Source of the DNA: Zygnema circumcarinatum SAG 698-1b
Taxonomy: Eukaryota > Plantae > Zygnematophyceae
Assembly (NCBI GenBank): GCA_037447605.1
Contig: CM074812.1
Location: 496,001-560,000, forward strand
Direction of reading: 5' to 3'
DNA: 64,000 nucleotides
Part shown: piece by piece, positions 9,269 through 64,000 of the stretch
How positions within the stretch are numbered: position 1 is the first letter of the stretch
How the letters are laid out: every line of letters starts with the position of its first letter
Notes under the pieces: model-generated
Database searches by the model: none
What the model saw: the letters and a program-made list of their open reading frames with translations, nothing else
Told to the model about the DNA's origin: nothing
Position numbers and translations under genes: made by a program

Positions 9269-9622
9269 ACTCACTTGCTTCAAATATTTAACAATAAAAA
9301 CCTAAAAAATAAAATAAAAAGCTCAAATACTTAAAAGAAATACGACTTAAAGCTCTAACCGTCTAAAAAGGCAGGAAACCCTAAAAATCGCACTTGCCAG
9401 CAGCATCCACCAAGCTCAGAGGACGCCCATAGAACGCCTTCTCAACCAGATTCACGTCCTGAACAAGCTCCCCGCTCTCATACTCCCGTCAAATGCTCCC
9501 TCCGAAAGCCATGGCTGCCTTCTCCAGGAAATGTAGGAAAGCCTTCGGCGCCAGCCCCAGCACTAGCTCAGCAACGGCTCTCTCTTCTCCTGCCCAGCAG
9601 GACCTGCGAGAGCCAGACTGTA

Positions 9623-9880
9623 CAGTATCGCAGGATATTGCGATATATGGCAGATGTTTGCAGGATATCGCAATATATCGCAGGTGTCGCAGAATATCGC
9701 AAGATTATCGCAATATTACAGATGGTCGCAGGATATCGCAAATATATTGCAGTTGGTCGAAGGATATCGCAATATATCGCAGGTTTTGCAGAATATCGCA
9801 ATATCGCAGACGGTTGCAGGATATCGCAATATATCGCAGATGGTCGCAATATATCGCAATATATCGCAATATATCGCATT
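9623..9880. repeat. Degenerate tandem repeat of a GATATCGCAATATATCGCAG-type unit
   Basis: About 8-10 imperfect copies of CAGGATATCGCAATATATCGCAG; translations in several frames show only the repeating AIYCDILR/RISQYIA pattern. Confidence 0.85.
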
Positions 9881-10158
9881 CGCTAACAGAGCAGTAACAT
9901 CGTACGCTACATGCCATGGGCAGGTACCGGTACATGGACAATTGCCACTTGGGGAACCACGAGGAGCCACTCACAAAGCACCGAAGGACCCCAAGAAATA
10001 AACTATGAATTGAACAGATAAGATAGTGACTAAAGTAAATTTAGCATCACGGAGGAGTTCGGCTCAATAGCCATTAGAGCCACCATTATGGCCATCCTAG
10101 TCACGTAGTCAACCGCGAGCCAATAGGGGGAGTCAGACTTAGCCCGGAGCGTACTAAG

Positions 10159-10531
10159 TTCCCGAATTTAGTATACTAAAAATCAAAGTTTCGTGTACGA
10201 ATTCCGGATCGGGATTCGCGGCTCCGCCGAGCCCAGCCGTACTGAAATGCGCACCTAGCCAATGCTTAGTTTGCCCGACAGGCTTACGAAATTGATTTGG
10301 CGATGGTCAAGGTCTGACTCTCCCTAATTTTAAGGGCATTTTAGGGGAAATTTAGGGGAAATTTAAGGGAGTCAGACCTTGACCATCGCCAAATCAATTT
10401 CGTAAGCCTGTCGGGCGAATTAAACATTGGCTAGGTACGCATTTCGGTACTGCTGGGCTCGGCGGAGCCGCGGATCCCGACCCGGAAATCGTACACGAAA
10501 GAAGCGACTTTTAGTATAAGGAATTCGGGAA
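10159..10531. repeat. Long imperfect inverted repeat (foldback): arms 10159-10320 and 10369-10531, 48-nt loop
   Basis: Manual reverse complement shows the arms ~90% identical; the innermost 48 bp (10273-10320 vs 10369-10416) are perfectly complementary. Confidence 0.93.
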
Positions 10532-10778
10532 TTTCGTAAGCGAATGTGAAGAATCGCAGACTCGCAACGTGTTGATTTGGCATTGGATATCAATTGGATC
10601 ATAGGTCGTTCTATGCTCTGCTGTAGTAGTAACACACAAAACTGGAGGGAATGAAACTGCGTTCCGTCACTGTGAACGTACAGAAAATCAGCGATCGGTC
10701 GGCCATTGGGGTCGTTCGCATTTTGCAAAAAAAGGCAAAGTGTGAGAACCAACTAAAAGGGTCCGTGATTCTCGGCAA

Positions 10779-10797
10779 CCAATTGCAATATGCCACG
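10779..10797 (+). promoter_or_regulatory. Perfect ERSE-type element CCAAT-N9-CCACG
   Basis: CCAAT tgcaatatg CCACG(TG) in the RhoGDI/SAHH divergent intergenic region. Confidence 0.45.
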
Positions 10798-10931
10798 TGA
10801 CCATGTATTGGAGGTGTCGAAATGTGATTGGCCCAATCTTGACACAAAAACAGTTTCTTTCAAAATGAAATGGTTAAATCAAAAAAAAAAAAAAAAAATG
10901 AAATGGAGTCCCACTCAAATTTTACTGCCCT

Positions 10932-11610
10932 GTACTTACAGTACAGTCAGCAGTCCTCATATTTTCCACCTTGTACAGTGCGTCCTCAAGAAATTCGCCC
11001 CGATTTTACCACCTTTTTGTACGGTAACTCTGTGTTAGCCGGACTATCCGTACTATTCGTACCCCTAAAACCCCTAGAAACCCTAAAAACCGTACTAGCC
11101 GTACTAGCCGTACTAGCCGTACTTGCTGTACTAGCCGTTACGGGCTTCAGCAAAACTCACCGAATCTTCCCGCCCGTGCCGCCGTAAGCGGCGCTCGCTC
11201 CACTTTCCTCCTTCTTGGCTTCGATACGACACGATACGATACGATACGCGCTACGATACGCTACGACGTGATACGGCACGATACGTACGGTCCAACATGA
11301 ACTCTAACATAGTACCGCCCGTCTATTGGTAACACGAATCTTCTATTTGCAAAAATCAATATTTTCGCCTCATATTTGCCAAAACCATGGCGAAAATATG
11401 AGGACTGTTCACTGGATGGGAACGTTCAGTACGGAAGCATACTGTACGGTACAGTACCGCCTGCTCATGTCCGTACTATACCGTACATCGACCTCATTTC
11501 TGCGAAAAAACATGCAACATAGGCGGCGGGCATTACAAAACATTTTTCATTCTGCCCGAAATATAATCAACAGTCCAGATCCTCCTTACTGATTATCCAA
11601 CGGTTGGTAC
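10932..11610. promoter_or_regulatory. Dense GTAC/CCGTAC cluster (SBP-domain-type cores) upstream of SAHH
   Basis: 20 GTAC tetramers counted in ~680 bp (about 2.7 expected at uniform composition); 5 of them lie in a 9-bp tandem repeat. Confidence 0.5.
11090..11138. repeat. 9-bp tandem repeat (CCGTACTAG)n, about 5 copies
   Basis: CCGTACTAG CCGTACTAG CCGTACTAG CCGTACTTG CTGTACTAG. Confidence 0.9.
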
Positions 11611-12045
11611 CCAGCCAGGGTTTTAGGATTCGCGTTCCGAGGGTTGAGAAGAGGCCCAAAAAATTTCAAGAGGCAGGCAGGACCCCACGTCGGCGTGCCG
11701 GCCTGGCCCATTTCTGCGAAGCCTGCGAGCCGTCCCGGGGCAGGAGAAAGGATCTCCCTCCACCTGACCGGAAAAGCCTCTAACAGTCAGCGACGTCCCA
11801 CGTGGAATTTTTGTCTCATCGAACGGCTCTTATCGATTCGGTCAGTCGTTGAAATGTTTTCAACGATCTTGGCAGACCGGTTCCAGGCAGGAGGTTCCTA
11901 CTCTTGCAGTCCCCACCAAACGTTCAAATACTTGGCAGCACTGGAGAGGAAGTGTTTTGCAGAGAGAAAGAGAGCGAGAGAGAGAGGGAGAAAGAGAGAG
12001 AGAGAGGAAAGAGGTAGAGAGAGCGGGAGAGAAGGCGGAGCCGCC

Positions 12046-31803: not shown

Positions 31804-33033
31804 TCACAGATCCCAAGGGCAAAAAAAATTGACATGAGGAAACGACCTTCGTAGCTTGTGAATCTCTTTCATGAAGTCCGAATACTCGTCAGGAAATATC
31901 TGCGACTGAGCCAGAGTCAGATGGAGCTCCTTCAAAGTCGAGCAGGACTTCAGCCATTCATCCAAATGAGCATACACGTTGGCTCCCCTGAAAGTATCAA
32001 ACTTCCTCGGAATCTTGATCTCATTCAGTTTCAGTTTGCGAAGACAAGGGAACGCATTGCTTCCTCTTGGCACTCCAAATCTGCACTTCCACTCAAGCAA
32101 GGAAACCGTGGCATGTACAGAAAGCGTTTGAACACTGTTCTCTGCAAGAGAGAGAAGGGCTTCGAGGACATTGCTGCGTATGAAGGGTCCAAATTCGCAG
32201 TGTAAGATGTTTAACATGTGCGGCTTGACCTGTTCCTCCTCTAAAGCTACTACTGCCTTGCACTGTTGTCCAGAAAACTTGAGACTTTCCAACAAGGGCA
32301 TCGTGGGTTTCAGGACAAGGGATCGCACTATGTTCGGGACGTCCAAAGATAAAAGGTTTTTACATCTGACTGTGAGAATGTTTGTCACTTCTATGTTGAC
32401 TTTCAAATGCTTCAAGTTTGGATGTCCAACGACCACATCGCTGACCGCGGCCGAAGTCTCCAAATCCAAAGCAATGAGGTTGGGAAAAAAGAGTAAGAAA
32501 TCTTGTAGTAGAACGAAGTCGCTCTCGCTGATCACATACAAAGTGAGGGACCTCACTCCTCCCAAACAGAGGGAGCCAATCATTAAGTCTTGGCGAAGTG
32601 TCACTGTAACATTTAGGGTTTCCAAGCAGGGGAGCTCTGACAGTGCACGTAATTGGAGATGATGATCAATACGACTGATGTCCAATTCTCTGAGGGTTTC
32701 TCCAACCTCTTTCCGCCATATGCATAAAGTCTGAGGGCCAACCATGGTACGCCGGTCTTTGATGAACAACTTCTCCAATCTTGACGTCAAACGAACAAGA
32801 GAATTGAAGTGATCCACGTCTCGGAACAGCATGGTGTTGTTAACCGTTATGGAGGTTACAGCGCTAACTGCTTCCCGAAATGATGTGCAGACGGTGCAGT
32901 ATTTTACCAGCAATATGTATTCGCCTTGAGTGGCACGAAAGATTATGTCTGTCAATATGACGATCGGAAGGTCGGTGATTGTCGCAGCATCAGATGATGT
33001 GTGCTCTGCATTCTCCCCGTCTGGATAGGCCAT
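31804..33033 (-). CDS. Intronless F-box/LRR (FBD-like) protein, 409 aa
   Basis: Uninterrupted ORF from ATG 33033; F-box-like ITDLPIVILTDIIFR..LVKYCTVCTSFREAV followed by LRR-like LxxLxL repeats (LEKLFI, LRELDI, LETLNV, LIALDL, LKHLKV, FPCLRKLKL, LKELHL). Confidence 0.8.
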   Translation of the reverse strand: MAYPDGENAEHTSSDAATITDLPIVILTDIIFRATQGEYILLVKYCTVCTSFREAVSAVTSITVNNTMLFRDVDHFNSLVRLTSRLEKLFIKDRRTMVGPQTLCIWRKEVGETLRELDISRIDHHLQLRALSELPCLETLNVTVTLRQDLMIGSLCLGGVRSLTLYVISESDFVLLQDFLLFFPNLIALDLETSAAVSDVVVGHPNLKHLKVNIEVTNILTVRCKNLLSLDVPNIVRSLVLKPTMPLLESLKFSGQQCKAVVALEEEQVKPHMLNILHCEFGPFIRSNVLEALLSLAENSVQTLSVHATVSLLEWKCRFGVPRGSNAFPCLRKLKLNEIKIPRKFDTFRGANVYAHLDEWLKSCSTLKELHLTLAQSQIFPDEYSDFMKEIHKLRRSFPHVNFFCPWDL

Positions 33034-33038
33034 GGCTT

Positions 33039-33077
<39 letters not shown>

Positions 33078-33492
33078 CCTTTCTGTCTTTCAATAGAAAA
33101 TCTTCATCTCTTTATACTTATCATCAAGCAAAAGCATCGGAAAAAAAGTGCCTGAATGCAATGCATGCAAATTCGGCGTTCCCCGTGACGAGCACATCGG
33201 CCGTCGACGGCGGAGCGGGGCCGCGTCGAGGCGTTCTATGTCCCCCAGTTCGTTCGCTGATGTCGGCTTGAAGGGAACCCCCGCTAGCTGGCTGGCTAGC
33301 TGCGTAAAGTTAATAACTAATTCTCTCCTTTGCGGCCAGTTTCTCGTGGTTCCCCATGATGATGTTGTCCATGCACATTTGATGAGATCAATGCCACATC
33401 CTTGTCATTATATTCTCTACAAAGCGAGAGGGTTGATGCATGAACCAAGCTGAACCAGTGAAGGCTCATGGCCATGAATGCAAATGTGCTGG

Positions 33493-34414
33493 CGTGGTAG
33501 CCTGCGATTGGTCGAGTTTCCAGCCAAAAGTTCGTAGGTTGAATCACGTTCGTTGCTAGGCCAACCACCGATGGGTTGCCACTTGCCACACTGCCAAAAG
33601 TGATGACGTGTCATAGTGCGCTTGGCTAACTGTCGCATTTTTTTTTCCCAGCTGCCTGTTAGCCTCAACCAATGATGGCTCGCCACGCTGGCTTTATGAT
33701 GACGTGGCAGTCAACCATTGGTCCATTCTCAGCAGTTTTTGGCGTCCAAGAGAGCTCGGCCCTATTTTTAACTAGTGAGTCTAAACCAATAATGGGTCGC
33801 CACGTGTTCAAAATATGCTGACATGGCACGTTACCATTGGTTCATTCTTCACCCTACGCGTTCTATAGAGCTCGGCCCCATTTCACGAGTCTTTATGATG
33901 TCGCGGCTGCTTCTAGTGCCGTGTTGTTGAGCCTAGAAGTAGATTTCCGTTTCGAGGCTTTCTCTTTGTCCTTCTGTCCCTTGTGACCGCTTCTTCTGGT
34001 TCCCTATGTCGATTTTATCCATGTACATTTGATGGCCTTGCCATCGTGAGTTCAATCAAACCTCTCTCTTGTTAATGATGGCTCGCGACATGTGCGAATT
34101 GCTAGCGTGGTAGACTGCCATTGGCCCACACTCCACCCCAATTACGTTCAATGGAGCTCGGCCCCATTTCACTAGTGAGCCTTAACCAATGATGGCTCGT
34201 CACTTGTGCTAATGTGCTGACGTGACAGGCTGCCATTGGCCCACTCTCCACCCCGAAAAAAAAACAGTACGTTCAATGGAGCTCGGCCCCATTTTATACG
34301 AGTAACCCACCCTAAGCCTTAACCAATATGGATCGTCACGTGTGACGATTTGCTAGCGTGGCAGGCTGCCATTAGTTTAGAATTCACCCCGTACGTTCAA
34401 TGCAGCTCGGCCCC
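33493..34414. promoter_or_regulatory. Tandem array of ~115-135-bp degenerate units carrying paired ERSE (CCAAT-N9-CCACG) and UPRE-like elements
   Basis: Units start near 33661, 33778, 34071, 34178 and 34315 (older copies at 33480-33660). Perfect ERSE at 33493-33511(-), 33669-33687(+), 33703-33721(-), 33786-33804(+), 34106-34124(-); TGACGTGG at 33700, TGACGTGA at 34218; the units end in GAGCTCGGCCC or a close variant. Confidence 0.75.
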
Positions 34415-35696
34415 AGTTCGCACGTGCGCGTACCGCCATCAGCGACAAGATTTTCACGCGGATCCTCCCACGAGGCCGACGGCCAATCGGGTCCTTCAAT
34501 CGCGCTCGTGCGGTGCGCTCTGCACGACACGTGCCGAACTCTGCGGCAAAGATTCATCGGAAACGCCACGTGTCAGGCTCTCCGTCAATCTGGGAGTCTT
34601 AGGAGTACACCAACGACCGTTCAGTACGGTATTGGACAAAATCGCCTGCACAGAATCGCGCATTAAAGAAACGGATCTTGACTTCTGTCTAAAGGATTTG
34701 GCCAAACACACGGACGTCTGCAGGTTTTGTCGTTTAATGGTTGGTCCCAATCAGCAACGGCTCGCTGTCAAGTCTAACTGTCAACTTTGAAAAGGCGGAA
34801 GCATTTTTTTCTTGAATCAAGGGAGCATTTTGAACAGAAAATAAATAACAAAACTAGCTATGTTCTAATCCAAACCGACCGATGTACCAGCGTGGACAGT
34901 TGACAGCCGTCAGATTTATGTTCTCCCAGTAGAAAGCAATTTTATTATGATTGAATCTTTTCTTCGTCACTTACCGTAGAATTTTGCGGGGTTGTAGAGA
35001 AAAATGTCTTACCTGCATTTTTTTTTTTCCCGTTTTCGAGTCAGAACCGCCCGCCAAACGCGGCCGTACGGCCAAGCTTTGCATTTCCAACCGTTGGGAC
35101 CCTCCAACTGCCGTTTCCATGATCACAGTTTCCGATTAAAATCAGGAACGTGTATTTCGCCCGATCGATCACATAGAAAGGTTTAGATATCGGCCACTCA
35201 GAACCTGACACGTGTTCCGTCCACTGTCACATAAAGCGACAAAATAGTACGAAAGCCCTGGCAGGTTGCAGGTGCAGGAGGGGTCGAAGGGGCAGACAGG
35301 CGGTCGTGCAGGGATGGGAGAGCTCCATGTTTAGGGCAAATTTTCGCCTCAGATAACTTGCATAATCTTGCTGCAAACTGACTATTTGGAGCGCATTCTC
35401 AGGATATTGACCTTCCTTGTTCATTTCAAGAAGGTTCAATGTTTCAGTTTGGCACAATATTGCTTAAAGTTAGGGCACATGTACGCACTTGTGCTGCAGT
35501 TGAGTGTGCTTCTGCAGGAATGCAGGGAAGAGGAGGTCTTGGGAGCCCCTAAGGTCTATGTTTTTTGGACCTCTTAAAAATTTAGGGTTTCGGAGGGGCT
35601 TGAGCCTGTGAGGCGTCCTGGAAGGCGGCATTTTGGGCAGATTTGAAGGAAATTAGGGTTTGAAAGCTTGTTTGATTGGCGGGCTAGAACTGGAAA

Positions 35697-47810
<12,114 letters not shown>

Positions 47811-56852: not shown

Positions 56853-59074
56853 GGAGGGAGGGGGGGTAGGGGGGGGAGGAGGGNNNNNNNNNNAGGGAGA
56901 GAGGGAGGGGGGGGAGGAGGGAGAGAGGGAGGAGGGAGAGAGGGAAGGGGGGAGAGAGAGAGGGAGAGAGAGGGTGAGGGAGGGGGGGAGGAGGGAGAGA
57001 GTGAGAGAGGGAGAGAGGGTGAGAGGGAGAGAGGGAAGGGGAGGAGGGAGAGAGGGAGGAGGGGGAGGAGGGAGAGAGGGAGAGAGGGAGAGAGGGAAGG
57101 GGGGGGAAGAGCGGAGAGGAAGAGAGAGGGGAAGAGGGGGGCTCGTTCTGAATTGGGGCGCTTGATACAGGGTCGGTATTTGGAGAGCGCTCAGTTTCTG
57201 AACTGGAGTCGATATTCTACTCCAATCGGATTTTTTTTGGAGGTGGTTCATGGGGGTGAGAGAAATGCCTGCGGGGAAGTGGGTAGGGTTGAGGGCTGAG
57301 GGTATAGGGGTCAGGATGGAGGGCTGAGGGTTGAGGATGTAGTTGGGTTTTGCGGTTCTTGTATAGTTATCTCTAATCGCTTTTCTATTTAGTATGCAAA
57401 GTTTGAGCACGCTTGTGCTTGTACAACAGGTTTCCCGTTTCGCAGTCATTTCCGCTTGTGCAACGAAAGTTTTGGAGCTTCATTATGTCACGCTTTTTCT
57501 TTCTTTCCTCTGTAAATCTTGAAAATTTCGGAAATGAAATCATTGGCTCTAGCTTTTCTAAAGTCAGCGTGTGCCATCTTTAATGGACTGGCAAACTTCT
57601 TTTCGGTTTTTTTCACTCTCAACGTCTCCAATTACAGAACGGTTTCAGTGCTGTGAGGGCAAGAAAGTGCACTGGTTAGACGTCTGATGGTGTTGGGCTT
57701 TACGCTGCGATTGTTCTCTGACAAAATGAGTGCAGCACAGAATTCTCTCTTTGGAAGTGCTCAAAATGCTGAAAGTAAAGGATGTGGCATTGATCTCTGA
57801 AAGCAGCACAATGCGAGGCCTGTTGTCACATGTAAAGAGGAGCTTATTGCACATAATACGTAACATAAAGCATGGCAATGTTCCAGCTTTGTAAGCCACC
57901 ATCCAACCTTCAAGACAGACACTGGGAGTTGCCGGTGTTTTCAAGCCTGGATTGACATCGGTTTCAAGTCTTTTTGAAGTTAAAAACGCGCGCAACGTGA
58001 CCGCATGGTCTAAAAAGGGCCTGCTTTCAAAAACCTCAAAAGGCTACACATTTCGAGAGGCTGCCGACGCTGAAACTTCTGAATCTGCCGCAGCCTCCCT
58101 GAACCCTCAAGCCTAAAGACCCTATAATGCCTTTAGGCTGGGCAATGCAGTACCGCAAAAATTGCAGACTCCAGACTGAAGACTAGAAACCGGAAATTGG
58201 AAAATTGCATCCTCTTCCACTATCAAGCCATCCTTGAAGACTCGCTGTGAACGGGAGGACTGGCGGCTACAGTAGGATAAAGAGGAGGTCAAGAAGAAGA
58301 ATAACCCCTTCCAATATCTCCCACCAAAAAGGACGTGAAGCCGCATGGAACCCTAACTAACGTACACTTAGCATACAAACACTGAGCACAAGGGCGTGCT
58401 TCACAGCTGAGAACGCACCCTTTCTCTCTCTCGCCTCCCCTCCCCTCCTCTCTCTCGCTCCTTTTCTCTCTCTCCTCCCCCCCCCCCTTATCTCTGCTAT
58501 GGCAGAAGAACTATTTACCTTTCAAACAACGGCCCTTTGGCCATTATTCCAATGTAGCCATTTACTACTACCATTGGTGCCTTGGGGGCATACTGCTAAG
58601 AAGGGAAAGCTCCCGCTCCTTCCTTCCCTTCCTCCCTCCCCAACCTCCTATTACAAAGTTCCACACTCCCGCTTCCTCTATTTGTACTTTGAAGAAGAGG
58701 ATTGGAGTTTCCCAGACGCGAGGGGCAGCTATAATATTTTGGGAGAGTGAGGGAGAGAAGGACGAAGTGCGGGAGAGAAGGGATGGACAGACAATTAAAG
58801 CCCTACCCCTTAGGGGAAGGGAGACGGCGGACGGAAGCGAGCGGGAGTGGCAGGGAGGGAAAGAGGAAGGAGCAATCTTCTGAAGGAAAACTCTCCTGTC
58901 CACTTCAAGGGAAAGTAGAAATACGGAAATTGCTGATAGTGATTTTTGCTGGTAAGCAGTTACGTTGAAAGGTTAGATAGAAGGGAAGATAGACGACGAA
59001 GCTGAAGAAGAGGAGAGAGAATATAGGAGGTTACTGGAAGAATGAAGAATATGCTTGCTTGCTTGTCCCAGAGG

Positions 59075-62003
<2,929 letters not shown>

Positions 62004-64000
62004 CGCCTTTCCTTTCTTACAGTTCAAACTCTGCTGCTCTTTAAAAATAAGCTTCCACAACACTCCTCTTATGAGGTATCAGGAACGCGCACTCTGAATA
62101 GTTTCGCATTCCTGCACATGAACCACGAAAGCAATCAGATAAGAGCCTATGTTATGCTACAAGCAGCCACTTGCAGAAATATTGTTAAGGATGTCCCTTA
62201 TCATCGCACCACGGCAGTTTGTAAGAACCGCTGAACAGAATCAAGCTATCTTTAACCAACTTAATCGGCCACATTAGACCAATTAAAACCAAACAAAATA
62301 AGCCCTTGTTCAGCTGCAACCTAATAAGTCAGACCAACATCACCTCCCTCTGCATCGCCGCATCCAGCCCTATTTAAACTCACTCACGCTCAGAGGGTTT
62401 GCCAGAAGTTACTTCCTGGCCGCCTCCTTTCAGCATGCATGCATCTGATTGGCAAGGACAAGACATGCCAGTTCTAAGACCTTAAACTTAAGTTCAGGCG
62501 TGAGTTTGAAGAAGCGCACGAGCTGCAGCAACAGTTGCAGGATTTGCAAGAGATGAACTTCAGGCCCTCTTCACGCCGTCAAAAATCATCAACTTAAGCC
62601 ATTACTTACCGCTTCCAAATACTTCAGATATTCCAGAAAACTTGGAAACGAATCTTGAATTGTGAGCTTTCACATACATACACACGTCCTCCTCCTGCAG
62701 GCTATGCAGGTGCGGAAGTGTTCCAAGACCGACTGGCTGCCTCCGTTGCAGGGCTGCACTGCATTCTGGCAAAATCAGAAAAAGGGATGGGAAGCTCCAG
62801 AAAAAGGAAGGCGCCAGTTTTGGACCAAGGGTTGGATCGACGGTCCGCGTTGCAGATCGCAAACCCGGACGGTTCAGATTTAGTCACGCCCGACCAATAT
62901 AGCTTTTGTGAAAGGACTGGGATCCACTTTCCCTTTTCGTTTTTATTTACTGGGATCAAGGGAGCACATTTGCAACGCCAGATTTCAGAAGCGTGTAATC
63001 GACGGCTGATATTGCAGTTTTGAGAATCGGACGGACGTACAATTGACGCGTCAAATCGGATTTTTAGACTAATGGGCAAAGATCCACTTTGCCACGGAAA
63101 TGGATGTGGAGGTGGACCTTGACGGTTGAGATTCGTCAAGGTGGGGGACTCACGATATTGGAGAACCATGTTTTTGAACTATCCAATGCTTATTCGACAC
63201 GTGTAATAGTTTATGCACGTTTCGTAATACTATTGGTGGAAATTTGAGAGGTTGACCCTCGGGCCTGGCCAACCGAGGGACTTGGACTTTCAGTTGATCT
63301 GATCCATTTCTTAAGTTTCGTATATCGGAGGGTCCAAAATGCACTTGGCGTTTTCCCATTGGTTTAATTCACTACCGTAACTTGGAGTGGCCCCTGGGTG
63401 CTGTACAGAGGGATACAAAACTGTACGGTATTGTACAATTCTGTGCGCAAAAATTGTTTTTTTCCAAACACGCCAAAAATGTGTCCCGCTAACGACGCAC
63501 GATTGGTCGGCCGCACATGCGACGCATTTAAATTTTAGCCCAACCGAAAAAGTCAAACAAGGAGGCTCATCTGATTGGCCCAAAATGCAGTTACACTTGT
63601 CGTTTTGAAAGAAATCGGTGCACTAGCAGCCAGAATGCATTTAATCCATATTTTTTGTCGTTTCTTGAATCTAGACGAAAAGTATCTGTGAGGAACTTTC
63701 AAACAAACTTGGGGCCGCGGCACCGTACGGACCGCTATAGACAATCGTGTGGCTGAGAGCAGTCAAAAACGACAAATAAAATTTCTATCGGTGTCGGCAG
63801 ATACGTCCAAATCGTAATCAGATACGATCTCCAAAAATCCGGCCTTTCGATACTTCCAAATCTTGAATCATGCTTATTGCCGTACTATAGTACGGTCTGA
63901 CTCCTGTAGGAATCGGTCCGATGAAATACAGCGGGACAGTGGGACTCCTTCACGGTCCAGATTTCCGCCAATTAGAGCGTACCACGTCAGATACGTACAC

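Follow-up and report, generated by a model that had tools for sequence, protein, structure and literature searches.

The question raised by this locus was what a cluster of sites resembling the endoplasmic reticulum (ER) stress element (ERSE) does between two divergent genes of the alga Zygnema circumcarinatum SAG 698-1b. The cluster lies in a 64,000-nt stretch of contig CM074812.1 (positions 496,001 to 560,000), which was analyzed as a whole and is called the window below. It is flanked on the left by an orphan F-box-like open reading frame (ORF) and on the right by an NT-C2 gene. A first-pass annotation had described it as a tandem-amplified, head-to-head ERSE enhancer that makes one of these neighbors a target of ER stress. 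The amplification of inverted ERSE-type sites in a divergent intergenic region was borne out. The specificity for ER stress was not, as the same module was also found beside the genes for S-adenosylhomocysteine (AdoHcy) hydrolase and a PP2C phosphatase. With a little better than even confidence, we interpreted the array as an old local tandem amplification, in which a general promoter module of the alga, of the mirrored NF-Y/bZIP type, was copied along with a tail of about 60 bp. In this interpretation the array would be partly maintained and partly decaying, and would add sites to a bidirectional promoter.

In ERSE-I, NF-Y binds CCAAT and ATF6 binds CCACG at a fixed spacing. The element is conserved in Arabidopsis, where the ERSEs of BiP3 have been functionally confirmed (PMC5499772). 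Plants also have the variant pERSE, CCAAT-N10-CACG, and plant unfolded protein response elements (pUPREs) (PMC3645738). Classical unfolded protein response (UPR) genes reach full activation through multiple copies of ERSE, and hundreds of ERSE matches are present in the human genome (PMC5890977). A literature search for an ERSE-type element in algae found no relevant paper.

Seven diverged units carry mirrored CCAAT-N9-CCACG sites

A pattern scan detected seven perfect CCAAT-N9-CCACG sites in the window, whereas 100 shuffled sequences averaged 0.05 sites and reached at most one. Five of the seven lie in the array, and three more were found there when one mismatch was allowed. These sites span 33493-34375, and all have the 9-nt spacing of ERSE-I:

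33493 (minus), 33669 (plus), 33703 (minus), 33786 (plus) and 34106 (minus): perfect CCAAT-N9-CCACG
33822 (minus), 34221 (minus) and 34357 (minus): CCAAT-N9-CCACG with one mismatch

The first-pass annotation had reported both sets, and each site was found where it had placed it. It had also pointed to words matching the UPR element (UPRE) of the XBP1 type, TGACGTG(G/A), which are visible as TGACGTGG at 33700 and TGACGTGA at 34218. These octamers are the ACGT ends of right arms of the repeat units and not independent elements. Another word, GAGCTCGGCCC, occurs in four exact copies and one with a single mismatch, and is confined to the array within the window.

The repeat finder, a MAFFT alignment and a profile search resolved the array into seven diverged tandem units of 105-137 bp, arranged head-to-tail. 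A profile built from the units recovered all seven copies (nhmmer, E 6e-15 to 5e-34), in agreement with the diverged repeat unit of head-to-head sites that had been proposed. Pairwise identity among the units was 41-76%. Tandem Repeats Finder (TRF), run at a minimum score of 30, did not detect the array, because its units are too diverged, being old copies. The tandem repeat is real but old.

33440-33552 (plus): unit U0, degenerate; left arm 33455-33473 decayed, right arm 33493-33511 perfect on the minus strand; span 57 bp; lacks AGCTCGGCCC; nhmmer E 3.5e-20
33553-33657 (plus): unit U1, the most degenerate; arms 33565-33583 and 33607-33625 with two mismatches each; span 61 bp; GATGACGTGT present and a T-run in place of the tail; nhmmer E 5.9e-15
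33658-33774 (plus): unit U2; arms 33669-33687 (plus) and 33703-33721 (minus) both perfect; span 53 bp; TGACGTGG at 33700; AGCTCGGCCC at 33753-33762
33775-33890 (plus): unit U3; left arm 33786-33804 perfect, with a CACGTG G-box; right arm 33822-33840 with one mismatch, CATGG, a change of the CpG-to-TpG type; span 55 bp; AGCTCGGCCC at 33869-33878
33891-34060 (no strand): insert X', separating the blocks of units; segment 33972-34034 duplicates 33321-33384 (78%), which lies to the left of the array
34061-34174 (plus): unit U4; left arm 34072-34090 decayed (TTAAT...CGACA), right arm 34106-34124 perfect; span 53 bp; AGCTCGGCCC at 34155-34164
34175-34311 (plus): unit U5; left arm 34186-34204 with two mismatches, right arm 34221-34239 with one (CGTGA); span 54 bp; TGACGTGA at 34218; AGCTCGGCCC at 34280-34289; A-run inserted in the tail
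34312-34430 (plus): unit U6; left arm 34323-34340 with an 8-nt spacer (1-nt deletion) and TCACGTG, right arm 34357-34375 with one mismatch (ATTAG); span 53 bp; AGCTCGGCCC at 34404-34413, preceded by C instead of G

Each unit is built from a mirror-image pair of 53-61 bp and a tail of about 60 bp. In the pair, CCAAT-N9-CCACG on the left is followed by a gap of 15-17 nt and by CGTGG-N9-ATTGG on the right, which gives an imperfect palindrome. The outer spans of U2-U6 fall in the class of mirrored modules of 52-55 bp found beside a promoter island, and those of U0 and U1 are longer. The tail block AGCTCGGCCC is invariant in U2-U6. Also invariant in the unit tail is GGCCCCAT, which we take to resemble a class I TCP site.

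The units form two blocks, U0-U3 and U4-U6, with the 170-bp insert between them. A simple duplication of the first block to give the second was rejected, since the unit-to-unit identities do not pair accordingly. The identities are incompatible with a single block duplication, and the history of the array was therefore complex.

A modest excess of conservation in the half-sites

Conservation was computed on the MAFFT alignment of the seven units, with cells treated as independent and the shared ancestry of the units ignored. Mean pairwise identity was 0.78 in the 20 half-site columns and 0.685 when 20 core columns were drawn at random (permutation P 0.03). The consensus was matched by 88% of the half-site cells and by 77% of those elsewhere in the core (Fisher P=0.014). 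Perfect arms number five out of 14, where background decay would have left 1.07 (P about 0.003). The 9-nt spacer was kept in all seven right arms, despite the frequent indels in the tails.

On the other hand, the left spacer, GATGGCTCG, was conserved as well as the half-sites (mean pairwise identity 0.80-0.84 vs 0.78-0.82), and the most conserved block among U2-U6 was AGCTCGGCCC. The statement of the first-pass annotation that spacer bases vary while the half-sites persist thus stood for the half-sites and failed for the left spacer. It had also said that its reading would fall if a formal alignment found the half-sites no better conserved than spacer bases. The alignment found them modestly better conserved than the rest of the core, at a P value that disregards the kinship of the units, and no better than the left spacer. 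We took these results as modest evidence that some half-sites may be maintained.

The same data bear on a different explanation, that the array is a functionless, decaying minisatellite. A segment at the edge of a promoter would have been duplicated by slippage or unequal exchange, perhaps favored by its palindromic core, and the perfect sites would be leftovers in an array that is inert or simply tolerated. This would be consistent with the low identity among the units, their escape from detection by TRF, the heavy decay of U0 and U1 with changes of the CpG-to-TpG type, the lack of a perfect site in U5 and U6, and a left spacer and tail block conserved as much as the half-sites or more. It would not predict that half-sites outlast the other core columns, that perfect arms occur in excess, or that the spacing is exact in every right arm. 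The CpG observed/expected ratio of the array, which is well above the mean of the window (values below), also argues against it. We regard the minisatellite as a real but minority possibility.

The same module occurs in two more GTAC-rich islands

Outside the array, CCAAT-Nk-CACG was counted in the window at every spacing from k = 0 to 25. Four sites were found at k = 10, compared with 0-2 at each of the other spacings. Two of the four belong to mirrored pairs of array-like length:

10779-10831 (no strand): mirrored module of 53 bp; left arm perfect with CCACGTG, right ACGT decayed; match to the unit profile at E 0.002-0.012
63183-63236 (no strand): mirrored module of 54 bp; left arm CCAAT-N10-CACG, right ACGT at an equal distance from ATTGG

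Both are in CpG/GTAC islands and about 1.2 kb upstream of a gene. The first precedes the ATG of AdoHcy hydrolase (Pfam 2e-21 and 3e-44), and the second precedes the PP2C phosphatase gene (Pfam 1e-17). The window contains three GTAC-rich CpG islands, at 9501-11700, 34201-35300 and 62801-63900 (with 31, 8 and 7 GTAC words, respectively), and all three carry a CCAAT-N10-CACG module.

Two other kinds of words were noted in these regions. ATTGGCCCA recurs at 10838-10846, 34120-34128, 34235-34243 and 63574-63582, where a CCAAT box and the plant site II word TGGGCC, read on the other strand, presumably overlap. Telo-box-like AAACCCTAA words occur at 11055-11090, between the 10779 module and the start of the AdoHcy hydrolase gene and downstream of a dense GTAC cluster. 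Their position fits a long 5' untranslated region (UTR), or a UTR intron, of that gene.

An inverted pair of the same length precedes animal GRP94

Metagenome contigs were scanned for the mirrored pattern. The scan gave 26 loci, and none for the strict CCACGT/ACGTGG version. Twenty-two of the 26, in 16 distinct versions, were one type of locus, upstream of the animal endoplasmin (GRP94) gene (within contigs L001-L024; for example, L005:5549-5601 and L022:1986-2038). These contigs are animal, intron-bearing and of about 40% GC, and their downstream exons matched endoplasmin (Pfam HSP90 4e-43, PDB endoplasmin 4e-19). No contig appeared to be human. The pair consists of CCAAT-N9-CCACG, a 15-nt gap and CGTGG-N9-ATTGG, measures 53 bp (52 bp in one), and lies 250-320 bp upstream of the signal-peptide exon (exon 1). 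It is flanked by TGATGAC-like and GGTCACGT words. The loci on contigs L004, L009, L025 and L026 are unrelated to that of GRP94, and were taken as chance matches of the looser pattern.

The 53-bp head-to-head geometry likely serves as an ER-stress module in animal GRP94. This suggested that the architecture reflects how two NF-Y/bZIP complexes fit together. This is a real precedent for the idea of the first-pass annotation, one that covers the geometry of the module and not its stimulus in the alga.

According to that idea, the array is a dedicated UPR enhancer, in which inverted ERSE pairs bound by NF-Y and a homologue of bZIP17/28/60 render the F-box-like or the NT-C2 gene strongly responsive to ER stress. 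In motif and spacing the sites match ERSE-I, which is functional in Arabidopsis as in mammals (PMC5499772, PMC3645738), and classical UPR genes are driven by multi-copy ERSEs (PMC5890977). The UPRE-like TGACGTG(G/A) and GATGACGTG(T/G) words in the array, the modest excess of half-site conservation and the pair upstream of GRP94 point the same way. The neighbors do not. None of the orphan ORF, the NT-C2 gene, the AdoHcy hydrolase gene and the PP2C gene is an ER chaperone, ER quality-control or ER-associated degradation gene, and the F-box label of the first is weak. As the module stands beside ordinary genes, the motif by itself is no guide to ER-stress control in this genome. The decay seen in the units is a further point against such an enhancer, and we consider it distinctly unlikely.

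The array arose locally

The unit tail had no copy in the window outside the array, and the only match of the unit profile elsewhere in the window was a weak one to the palindromic core at 10777-10832 (E 0.002-0.012). A similarity of the tail to 63344-63400 was rejected, being out of register and without significance in the profile search. BLASTN of the 2.66-kb intergenic region as a whole against the window returned only self matches and one 20-nt match at 57778, and so gave no hint of a transposon. The repeat finder showed neither terminal repeats nor target-site duplications. Since the tail is unique to the array within the window, the array is a local amplification, with no transposon family visible at the 64-kb scale.

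The 20-nt match is exact and inverted. It joins 33384-33403, just left of the array, with 57778-57797, and may be due to chance or to a tiny shared repeat.

These searches argue against a repeat derived from a mobile element. They were weighed together with a related explanation, an epigenetic tandem-repeat switch that silences the adjoining orphan gene by methylation, like those of FWA and SDC in Arabidopsis, whose promoter tandem repeats are targets of methylation. An excess of TpG/CpA in the array, strongest next to the ORF, counts in their favor. As neither the unit tail nor other intergenic DNA recurs in the 64 kb, and no element ends were seen, we consider an origin or a role of this kind very unlikely.

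The units could also be small structured RNA genes or hairpin precursors, their arms pairing as a stem. When paired in this way the arms are 72.7% complementary, including G-U pairs, and U5 has matching changes on both arms. However, the stem would be short and imperfect, the number of double-change pairs was that of shuffled sequences (1 vs 1.1 expected), and Rfam gave no match at E<=1 in 33000-35000. Hairpin RNA was rejected as scarcely credible; the array is not a structured RNA.

Flanking genes and CpG context

The intergenic region that holds the array is divergent. The array extends outward from the left edge of a CpG/GTAC-rich island, which is probably the promoter island of the gene pair. 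The features around it are:

31807-33033 (minus): orphan ORF of 409 codons; N-terminus F-box-like by eye, body resembling leucine-rich repeats (LRR); ATG at 33033
33041-33075: (GA)17 run, immediately upstream of the ATG of the orphan ORF
34201-35300 (no strand): CpG island, observed/expected 1.17-1.3, with 8 GTAC words and several CACGTG G-boxes; adjoins the right end of the array
35697-37012 (plus): start of the NT-C2 gene; exon 1 at 35697-35771, a CT-rich intron, and exon 2 from 36767; GT/AG borders by eye

The ATG of the orphan ORF is 407 bp from the edge of the array and 460 bp from the first perfect site, the latter being the distance that the first-pass annotation had given. Its label of an F-box gene did not hold up. 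A Pfam scan of the ORF gave no F-box match at E<=0.1 and only sub-threshold LRR matches (E 0.003-0.005), and a PDB sequence search gave no match at E<=1. The exact product is not on record in public assemblies. A word-index search of 5.8 billion proteins found no relative at E<=0.001 within 0.55-1.75 times the length of the ORF, longer and shorter kin being outside its scope. Only the neighbors in the Atlas protein-language model were F-box clusters (0.93-0.96), and they serve as a lead only. We therefore describe the ORF as an orphan, F-box-like at best, on weak family evidence. It could be an F-box/LRR-like gene restricted to its lineage, or one in decay. The CpG observed/expected ratio of its gene body is 0.74.

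On the right, the divergent NT-C2 gene named by the annotation was recovered. It begins at 35697, and its exon 2 matched Pfam NT-C2 (E 6e-9) in a search made exon by exon. The ATG of the gene lies 1267 bp beyond the right end of the array. The first intron (35800-36700) is filled with CT/GA tracts. These are similar to a (GA)n/(AGAGAG) microsatellite at 38678-39768, which is more than 900 bp long, has a short (TA)n interruption, and reads as Glu-Arg repeats in ORF lists.

The dinucleotide ratios of the array lie between those of the island and the window for CpG, and above both for TpG/CpA:

Whole window: CpG observed/expected 0.58, TpG/CpA 0.92
34431-35100: CpG observed/expected 1.30, TpG/CpA 0.99
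Array overall: CpG observed/expected 0.86, TpG/CpA 1.3
U0-U1: CpG observed/expected 0.71, TpG/CpA 1.54

The units farthest from the island, which adjoin the ORF, appear deaminated.

A probable amplified promoter module

In the explanation that we favor, each unit would carry one ordinary promoter module, CCAAT-N9-CCACG(T), a gap of 15-17 nt and (A)CGTGG-N9-ATTGG, plus a tail with AGCTCGGCCC(C). From the motifs, we infer that NF-Y binds the CCAAT boxes with a bZIP or G-box factor recognizing ACGT/CCACG at a distance of ten bases, in the manner of known ERSE-type composite sites. As a homotypic cluster, the amplified copies would offer more binding sites to the bidirectional promoter. Several copies still seem competent for binding, and others appear to be decaying. 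Because the module is a general promoter building block, the array would most likely modulate ordinary promoter output, tuning its strength or robustness, and would not be a dedicated UPR enhancer.

Several observations weigh against this explanation. The generality of the module rests on two loci beyond the array. The left spacer is conserved as well as the half-sites and AGCTCGGCCC more so, and some of this conservation may be due simply to the units sharing a recent ancestor. No perfect site occurs in the two units nearest the CpG island, U5 and U6. The ACGT core is absent from three of the five perfect sites of the array, and present in all four instances outside it. Finally, the CpG ratio of the array, lower than that of the island (0.86 vs 1.3), and the high TpG/CpA of U0-U1 suggest past methylation and decay.

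A bolder version would make the array a selected, working 'super-promoter'. A cassette of the mirrored NF-Y/bZIP module and a TCP-like GGCCCC element, present seven times, would give the divergent gene pair an unusually strong or stress-gated output, and the 53-bp geometry shared with animal GRP94 would be an ancient architecture that predates the split of plants and animals. We consider this unlikely.

If the copies are active, the locus is a natural copy-number experiment, in which a single promoter carries from one to fourteen NF-Y/bZIP composite sites, all in a fixed geometry. It belongs to a lineage close to land plants, in which cis-regulatory logic has almost never been tested. The textbook 'ER-stress element' would be an everyday promoter part in this alga, and in animals an identical mirror pair of 53 bp is the mark of a genuine ER chaperone gene. 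Given these differing contexts, a motif match alone is unfit for annotating UPR targets across lineages. What is new is the tandem amplification of the mirrored module, a modest gain from one locus.

Comparison with known systems

Among the closest relatives of the array are the single mirrored modules of the window. U2-U6 are like them in span, with one module per unit, and the array likewise adjoins a CpG/GTAC island. It differs in comprising seven tandem diverged copies, in having an extra conserved tail (with AGCTCGGCCC), and in the loss of the ACGT core from several copies.

The half-sites and the 9-nt spacer are identical to those of ERSE-I, the element of NF-Y and ATF6/bZIP28. Like the array, the promoters of GRP78, GRP94, calreticulin and BiP3 carry several copies in both orientations (PMC5499772, PMC5890977). 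In contrast, the genes flanking the array have no ER role, and the module recurs beside housekeeping genes in the window. The array also consists of mirror pairs of 53-55 bp multiplied within a tandem unit of about 117 bp.

The repeats of FWA and SDC resemble the array: both are direct, with copies of about 100 bp that lie just upstream of a gene and show signs of earlier cytosine methylation. Unlike those repeats, the units of the array carry recognizable activator sites and have no origin from a short interspersed element (SINE).

The inverted ERSE pair of animal GRP94 has the same architecture and the same 53-bp length as the modules of the array. On the other hand, it is neither tandem nor general. 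It is a single copy, kept across 16 versions, upstream of a bona fide ER chaperone gene.

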